A DNA stretch of 63,465 bases, the filler included, from Reticulomyxa filosa (Eukaryota > Protista > Foraminifera), in assembly GCA_000512085.1 (NCBI GenBank). It is 26 parts of 26 records of this genome, joined end to end, with 100 filler letters (N's around TTAATTAATTAA, not from the genome) between each part and the next. Parts side by side here need not be neighbours in the genome. Positions count along the whole stretch, not along the records: positions 15,579 to 17,380 come from ASPP01017884.1; 25 more parts are not named here. The stretch is one strand, 5' to 3'. The notes beneath the pieces were generated by a model. It did no database searches and was not told where the DNA came from. It was given only the letters and a program-made list of their open reading frames with translations. The position numbers and the translations under genes are program-made. Positions 16,442 through 16,855 of the stretch are shown here, in pieces; the stretch's first letter is position 1; each line of letters opens with the position of its first letter.

Positions 16442-16855
16442 GCCAAGGTCGCCAAATGGTAGGGTACTACAAATGATGTTGTATGTGTTTGCTTTTTTTA
16501 TTTTTTTCTTTTTTTATTCTTTTTTTTTCCGGGTGCTGAAGGGTTGGTGATTGAAGTGTTGGTAATTGGGGGGTTGTGGTGACATAAGTTAATCATATGG
16601 TGCCACTTCATGTAGTTATTGGGATAAGTGGTAACTTCATGAAACTGTAGATAGCATCTACTACTTCATGCAAGTGTACTTATTCTGATAACTCATGTGA
16701 CTGCACCAAATGATTGTGGGGCATCTCAAGTAACTTAACAAGTGCAACCTCATTAGGTTAGTTACATGTAACTGCACTTGTTACACATCTTGTGACTGCC
16801 CCACGCAAACATATATGATATTAGTGGGATCAGTGTTCGAATCCCTGCTTTGGCA
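16442..16855 (+). ncRNA. tRNA-like RNA gene with a ~350-nt structured insert replacing the anticodon loop (element 2)
   Basis: Acceptor GCCAAGG/CTTTGGC+A, A-box TCGCCAAATGG, stem ACTA/TAGT, T-arm CAGTG-TTCGAAT-CCCTG (B-box GTTCGAATCC), 17-bp insert-closing helix, T4 at 16862. Confidence 0.78.

Follow-up and report, generated by a model that had tools for sequence, protein, structure and literature searches.

A tRNA-like unit of the foraminiferan Reticulomyxa filosa with a large foldable insert at the anticodon arm: possibly a tRNA gene interrupted by a small mobile element

DNA transposons of the Dada group insert inside genes for small RNAs (tRNA and snRNA genes) and leave the two halves of the gene on either side of the element. 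They occur in animals and in a protist, Perkinsus, and the tRNA genes occupied differ from one Dada family to another (Kojima & Jurka 2013, PMC3706591). Dada elements have a transposase, and internally deleted, non-coding derivatives of them exist; they are bordered by short direct repeats of the gene sequence (duplications of 6–7 bp), their inverted repeats are sub-terminal, and the sites reported for them are mostly the A box or other fixed sites. MITEs are mobile elements of less than 600 bp that are AT-rich and foldable, have no reading frame, and carry a terminal inverted repeat and a flanking direct repeat. Protein-spliced introns also interrupt the anticodon arm of tRNA genes, canonically at position 37/38, the end of the intron pairing with the anticodon region; they measure 6–133 nt in eukaryotes and 11–129 nt in archaea (PMC4090602). 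There are two further kinds of RNA in which an acceptor/T-arm domain carries a large structured insert in place of the anticodon arm: tmRNA, which has a G3.U70 alanine identity pair, and the engineered “tRNA scaffold” RNAs, which are artificial. Finally, in the archaeal split tRNAs (Nanoarchaeum and others), the 5′ half has a tail complementary to the leader of a separate 3′ half, with a terminator next to it.

The window considered here is a joined stretch of 63,465 nucleotides from Reticulomyxa filosa (Foraminifera; assembly GCA_000512085.1), and the locus lies in the piece ASPP01017884.1, which occupies positions 15579–17380 of that stretch. The analysis covers one copy, in this 1.8-kb piece, of a tRNA-like unit of 414 nt, at 16442–16855 on the plus strand (Table 1). 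The piece has a G+C content of 33.6%, and its stop-free frames, on both strands, do not exceed 72 codons, so that it looks like eukaryotic non-coding DNA. The original prediction had described the unit as a giant RNA built on a tRNA scaffold, and all the sequence strings on which that description rested are found where it had placed them.

Table 1. Features of the tRNA-like unit and its immediate flanks (positions in the joined stretch)
Feature	Position	Strand	Remarks
T-rich upstream flank (T11, T6, T5)	16403–16441	+	abuts the tRNA-like 5′ end
tRNA-like 5′ half	16442–16472	+	acceptor 5′ strand, U8 C9, D arm, A26, start of anticodon stem CTAC (16467–16470)
Direct-repeat copy 1, ATGATGTTGT	16473–16482	+	possible target-site duplication or anticodon-loop sequence; outer closing helix
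Left inverted terminal repeat, ATGTGTTTGC	16483–16492	+	inner closing helix, 5′ strand
T-rich microsatellite-like tract (T7, T7, T7, T9)	16493–16528	+	period 16, 2.6 copies
G/T-rich tract	16529–16589	+	15-nt repeat TGAAGGGTTGGTAAT, 2.7 copies; weakly structured
Long rod hairpin, ~125 nt	16590–16716	+	RNAfold helices
Branched arm 2, ~90 nt	16716–16804	+	closed by GUGGGGCA/UGCCCCAC; 10-bp inner helix, two small apical hairpins
Right inverted terminal repeat, GCAAACATAT	16805–16814	+	9/10 complementary to 16483–16492
Direct-repeat copy 2, ATGATATTAG	16815–16824	+	7/10 identical to copy 1; first five bases exact
tRNA-like 3′ half	16822–16855	+	anticodon-stem 3′ strand TAGT or GTGG (register-dependent), variable loop, T arm, acceptor, discriminator
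T4 run, tRNA-gene-type terminator	16862–16865	+	7 nt past discriminator

Both ends of the unit derive from a tRNA. The acceptor strands GCCAAGG (16442–16448) and CTTTGGC (16848–16854) pair at seven of seven positions, one of them a G.U, and are followed by the discriminator base A16855. The D arm (16451–16465) reads GCC / AAATGGTAG / GGT, with A14, G18, G19 and A21 in place, the variable loop is short and ends in U48, and the T arm, CAGTG-TTCGAAT-CCCTG (GTTCGAATC; 16831–16847), has a single mismatch, U52.C62. The universal features sought are all present (U8, A14, G18, G19, A21, G53, T54, T55, C56, A58, C61 and the 7-bp acceptor stem), and the tertiary partners have been kept: U8 with A14, A15 with U48, G18/G19 with the T loop, and G53 with C61. 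The closing helix of the insert is placed exactly at the start of the anticodon stem.

How readily such a pattern arises by chance depends on how much of it is required. Of 20,000 dinucleotide shuffles, 602 (3%) contain a T arm and, no more than 640 nt away, a 7/7 acceptor partner, which alone is weak evidence; once U8 and the D-arm features are added, the same descriptor is found in only 2 of 20,000, or about 1e-4 per 1.8-kb piece, which argues that the tRNA core is not a product of chance. The intron mode of ARAGORN calls a tRNA-Ile(GAU) with a 342-nt intron, and it does so only at a lowered threshold (ps93), at which shuffles of the piece give 17 matches per 300, so that a lone ARAGORN call is not significant. 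The last figure and the 3% would suit a chance resemblance, or an assembly chimera of unrelated tRNA-like fragments together with local palindromes, but the rarity of the full core descriptor speaks against chance, and halves brought together from different genes would not be expected to pair 7/7 across 400 nt or to have a closing helix exactly at the anticodon stem. Such an origin is the least probable of the explanations weighed here.

Between the two halves, where the anticodon arm belongs, there is an insert of about 332–342 nt, which is AT-rich, below 600 bp and without an open reading frame. RNAfold gives the 414 nt a free energy of −147.6 kcal/mol, compared with a mean of −104.7 for shuffled sequences (z = −7.26), and none of 100 shuffles equalled it. 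When the cloverleaf arms are enforced the energy is −139.3 kcal/mol, and that fold has, in order, a 4-bp CUAC/GUGG stem with an AAA bulge, the closing helix, the T-rich and G/T-rich tracts, the rod and arm 2. Together with the 7/7 acceptor stem and the 2/20,000 shuffles, this z score bears out the structural core of the original prediction, namely a tRNA-type acceptor/D/T core around a large self-pairing insert at the position of the anticodon arm. The closing helix had been given as 17 bp with four G-U pairs; it is reproduced by RNAfold and lengthened to an unbroken 19 bp (16474–16492 / 16805–16823) with five G.U pairs. By way of a separate observation, a 21-nt stretch 420 nt upstream (16032–16052) shows 81% complementarity with the 5′ strand of this helix (16473–16493), probably by chance, as there are many such pairs in the piece.

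Within the insert, RNAfold recovers the long rod (16591–16715) with all five helices that had been listed for it, and the second branched arm, which had been described as GTGGGGCA/TGCCCCAC (16716–16804). The rod comprises AAUCAU/AUGAUU, UGGUGC/GCACCA, CAUG/CAUG, a 17-bp helix with three G.U pairs, ACUUCAUGAA/UUCAUG-AAGU and GUAGAU/AUCUAC, and ACTTCATG recurs in it at 29-nt intervals. A 16-nt motif, TCWTGTGACTGCMCCA, is common to the rod and arm 2, whose overall similarity is weak (E = 0.03). Sliding windows over the unit single out just the rod and arm 2, at a z of about −5 each and on both strands. Elsewhere in the piece there are two neighbouring hairpins at 15833–15918, one with 17-nt arms that are 94% complementary (15833–15873) and one with 25-nt arms that are 76% complementary (15868–15918); these reach a sliding-window z of about −4, also on both strands, and have no sequence in common with the hairpins of the insert.

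Possibly, the unit is what it was predicted to be: either a genuine structured RNA scaffolded on a tRNA or a giant intron in a tRNA gene, with all 414 nt present in the transcript. The tRNA core would then serve to attract RNase P, RNase Z or CCA-adding enzymes or to make the RNA more stable, while the arm would be functional or be excised as an intron. We consider this unlikely, though well worth weighing. The strength of the fold (z = −7.3), the intact invariants and tertiary partners of the core, and a T4 run at the right distance downstream, as had been reported, would all be expected of such an RNA. The fold also depends on the strand: that of the plus (tRNA-sense) strand is more stable by 40 kcal/mol than that of the minus strand (−147.6 versus −107 kcal/mol) and contains 21 G.U pairs versus 3. 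Among the pairs inside the main helices that are not Watson–Crick on the sense strand, eight to nine are G.U and none is A.C, and the region of the rod has no G/T skew that could account for this; the G.U-only pattern hints at selection on a plus-strand RNA and counts against a neutral inserted element. Further, the bases of the rod and of arm 2 differ by two double changes that keep the pairing (TGGTGC/GCACCA versus TGGGGC/GCCCCA, and CATG/CATG versus CAAG/CTTG).

These RNA-level signals have counterweights. A strand-symmetric alignment of the arms gives nine differences of the G.U type versus six of the A.C type, which weakens the signal, as does the location of four of the five G.U pairs of the closing helix where the two copies of the direct repeat pair together; most of the G.U excess is accounted for by this direct-repeat pairing and by the G/T-rich tract. 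For the rod and arm 2, stability is the same on either strand, as is expected of DNA palindromes, which favours an inserted element, and the similarity between them has the weak E value already given.

One objection to a 414-nt RNA comes from the T runs. Runs such as T7 to T9 on the sense strand are terminators for RNA polymerase III. There are four of them (T7, T7, T7 and T9) inside the unit, starting right after the 5′ strand of the closing helix, so that transcription from a tRNA-type promoter should stop near 16493 and should not yield the full-length RNA. A tRNA gene is expected to have no internal run of four or more T, and has a T4 run downstream; here the downstream T4 is present, and so are the four internal runs. 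The two microsatellite-like arrays of the insert look like unconstrained, neutral DNA. T runs and arrays of this kind would be intolerable in a Pol III transcript and harmless in neutral DNA, and thus favour an inserted element. Of the original prediction, the tRNA core, the insert and the sense-strand fold stand, whereas the T7–T9 runs argue against a giant Pol III RNA. T tracts are found outside the insert as well, one group at the left edge of the piece (15579–15616; T10 and T17) and one just upstream of the tRNA-like gene (16406–16440; T11, T6 and T5); both are 71–76% identical to the T-rich tract of the insert over 34–38 nt, which is probably shared low complexity.

Removal of the insert by splicing was considered in the same way. 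As ATGAT is present at both borders of the insert, the junction can be drawn anywhere between 31/32 and 37/38, including the canonical 37/38, which gives the loop AUGAUGU, and the end of the insert pairs with the anticodon region as in protein-spliced introns. However, the insert, at about 342 nt, is 2.5 times as long as the longest known intron of that class (PMC4090602). A search with the correct geometry found no bulge-helix-bulge motif at the insert junctions that would yield a proper tRNA (the only strict arrangements resembling one are rich in G.U and leave six nucleotides in the anticodon loop), nor was there a bulged 3′ splice site accompanied by an anticodon–intron pair. Of 600 junction variants made by deleting the insert in silico, 94 clear the default threshold of ARAGORN, at which 318 kb of unrelated DNA give no match. 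This is in keeping with a genuine tRNA-scaffolded RNA or giant intron, but the cloverleaves score only 100–107, which is borderline. Their flaws are the mismatch U52.C62 and an anticodon stem with either an A.A mismatch or an extra nucleotide. The anticodon is ambiguous, being GAU at the direct-repeat junction and AUG, with a perfect CTAAT/ATTAG stem, at the junction 16469|16811. Either anticodon would be unusual in a cytosolic tRNA.

ARAGORN in its default mode and Rfam at E ≤ 1 find no tRNA, tmRNA or intron family in the whole piece, and Rfam at E ≤ 10 finds no tRNA, tmRNA, group I or group II intron in 16430–16870. At that cut-off there are a few weak matches to generic hairpins (MIR7993, LcrF thermometer, SNORA33), all far below their gathering scores and disregarded as meaningless, and the metazoan-mitochondrial mode of ARAGORN gives one 52-nt call in the left flank, which was judged spurious. 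As for tmRNA, the unit shares its topology but has C3–G70 in place of G3.U70 and lies in a non-coding context that looks eukaryotic, and the tmRNA mode of ARAGORN, tag peptide included, finds nothing in the piece. The lack both of a bulge-helix-bulge motif yielding a proper tRNA and of an Rfam tRNA, tmRNA, group I or group II intron favours a broken gene, as does the worn tRNA body with its mismatches and borderline scores; the intact universal core residues and the 7/7 acceptor stem count against one.

The explanation that we put first, tentatively, is that a small inserted element, probably mobile, interrupts the anticodon arm of a nuclear tRNA gene or pseudogene, and that the locus most likely makes no 414-nt RNA. 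The insert would be some 332–342 bp of non-coding, AT-rich, palindromic, microsatellite-bearing DNA, most likely a small non-autonomous mobile element. Its arrival by insertion is suggested by a 10-bp inverted terminal repeat (16483–92 / 16805–14) that lies directly inside an imperfect 10-bp direct repeat (16473–82 / 16815–24), a layout which is that of a target-site duplication. A working tRNA would no longer be made from the locus. Should Pol III still initiate at the beginning of the tRNA 5′ half, the first T7 (16493) would halt it and leave an RNA of about 55 nt, consisting of the 5′ half and a hairpin.

In an AT-rich piece this signature of inverted and direct repeats is weak and not statistically compelling. 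The terminal inverted repeats are short, and there are 81 pairs of 10-mers in the piece that are likewise at least 9/10 complementary at a spacing of 150–600 nt, four of which also have flanks that are at least 7/10 identical; for random pairs of 10-mers, a flank identity of at least 7/10 has a frequency of 0.85%. The empty site rebuilt from the direct repeats is the cloverleaf that ARAGORN calls tRNA-Ile(GAU).

With its 332 bp, AT-richness, foldability and lack of a reading frame, the putative element fits the usual description of a MITE, with a terminal inverted repeat and a candidate for the flanking direct repeat; it departs from that description in that its inverted repeat is only 10 bp and its interior forms two independent hairpins, not one foldback. 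The precedent of Dada for DNA transposons inside tRNA genes also favours an inserted element. Like Dada, the insert sits inside a small RNA gene with a half of the gene on each side and is bordered by short direct repeats of the gene sequence, and, like the internally deleted derivatives of Dada, it is non-coding. It differs in its repeat (5 bp exact or 10 bp imperfect), in its inverted repeats, which are terminal, in its site, the anticodon loop, and in having no reading frame where Dada has a transposase.

Random insertions of transposons into 72-bp tRNA genes are rare. The original prediction reported a second element of the same architecture, with acceptor and T-stem sequences that differ and still pair, and took the two to suggest a large genome-wide family; if real, this second element would need either an element that targets tRNA genes or a functional family. 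That the stems differ and still pair would be equally expected if one element had entered different tRNA genes, as Dada does, and Dada-like families in different tRNA genes would explain it. Perhaps, instead, there is a family of tRNA-shaped genes in which the anticodon arm has been replaced by a structured RNA of 300–400 nt, the arm being either a protein-spliced intron about 2.5 times the length of any known or a natural “tRNA scaffold” by which tRNA-processing enzymes would be put to use in maturing and stabilising a large non-coding RNA. Such a family we regard as doubtful; in it, 16442–16855 would be one member, possibly with acquired T-rich microsatellites. No homologue was found in the collections scanned.

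The reported second element, which if true would imply a high copy number, bears equally on the suggestion that the whole unit (5′ half, insert and 3′ half) is repeated, either as an amplified interrupted tRNA pseudogene or as a functionless family of tRNA-derived repeats. The repeat-rich, low-complexity body and the worn tRNA are what one would expect of such a repeat. Known tRNA-derived SINEs, unlike this unit, lack a tRNA 3′ half at their end; the outer borders of the unit have neither a poly(A)-type tail nor a duplicated target, and acceptor and T stems that differ between elements are more easily understood as parts of different tRNA genes than as copies of a single unit. An origin of this kind is improbable.

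A different possibility is that the insert is bypassed, the unit being a split tRNA whose halves are made as separate transcripts and joined through the 19-bp helix, or the insert being germline-limited DNA that is excised with the ATGAT repeats as pointers. As in the archaeal split tRNAs, a T7 run comes right after the 5′ strand of the helix, so that a transcript of the 5′ half would end in a tail able to pair with the leader of the 3′ half, and direct repeats are present on both sides of the insert. On the other hand, the halves lie in cis, 330 nt apart and in a eukaryote-like context, their junction has no bulge-helix-bulge motif, a transcript of the 3′ half would have no evident promoter, and split tRNAs are unknown in eukaryotic nuclei (PMC4090602). 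The locus bears no sign of DNA elimination, and direct repeats as good as these are expected by chance in such DNA. Both forms of bypass are very improbable.

Relatives of the unit were sought in several collections. Metagenome scans with 25 nt of the 5′ half and 21 nt of the 3′ half gave no match to either, and viral scans with an 18-mer of the D arm and a 20-mer of the 3′ half gave none. There were 39 single matches in viral contigs to the internal motif shared by the rod and arm 2, about the number that, by a rough estimate, chance alone would produce with a 16-mer in a collection of such size. A prokaryote scan with the 3′-half 20-mer gave one match, which lies in coding DNA of a Gemmatimonadaceae MAG and is not a tRNA. 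Six ORFs of the piece had no exact match in the protein collection, a 60-aa pseudo-ORF used to look for homologues brought up nothing, and searches of the literature turned up no description of giant tRNA introns from Foraminifera or any other protist.

Several other identities were rejected. Retarian mitochondrial genomes have no tRNA genes (PMC10127745) and the piece lacks coding density, which speaks against an organellar origin. A spliceosomal intron (GTATGT...TTAG) would leave a spliced product that is not a tRNA, and the ends of the insert do not fit an LTR element or retroposon. The insert contains strings resembling the boxes of C/D or H/ACA snoRNAs, without a proper D box or pseudouridylation pocket. 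Outside the insert, at 15913–15989, there is a weak C/D-box snoRNA-like match to snoR118 (20.3 bits, compared with a gathering score of 44; E = 0.53), which is probably due to chance.

What the locus means depends on which of these explanations holds. If the insert is mobile, there is one more tRNA gene broken by an insertion, which is of modest interest. If, in addition, the element targets the anticodon loops of tRNA genes, target-specific DNA transposons such as Dada would gain a further group of hosts and a further kind of site. Transcription and processing of the unit would instead make it a natural large RNA borne by a tRNA frame, or the longest tRNA intron on record, and either would bear on how tRNA-processing enzymes measure and tolerate their substrates.

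The flank downstream of the unit has two small repeats of its own. Immediately 3′ of the tRNA-like end, a 16-nt motif, ATTTTAYATTTGTTTG, recurs at a spacing of 56 nt (16861–16932), and farther downstream (17100–17137) there are two copies, 26 nt apart, of an exact 12-nt direct repeat, TTCATCTGCCGA.
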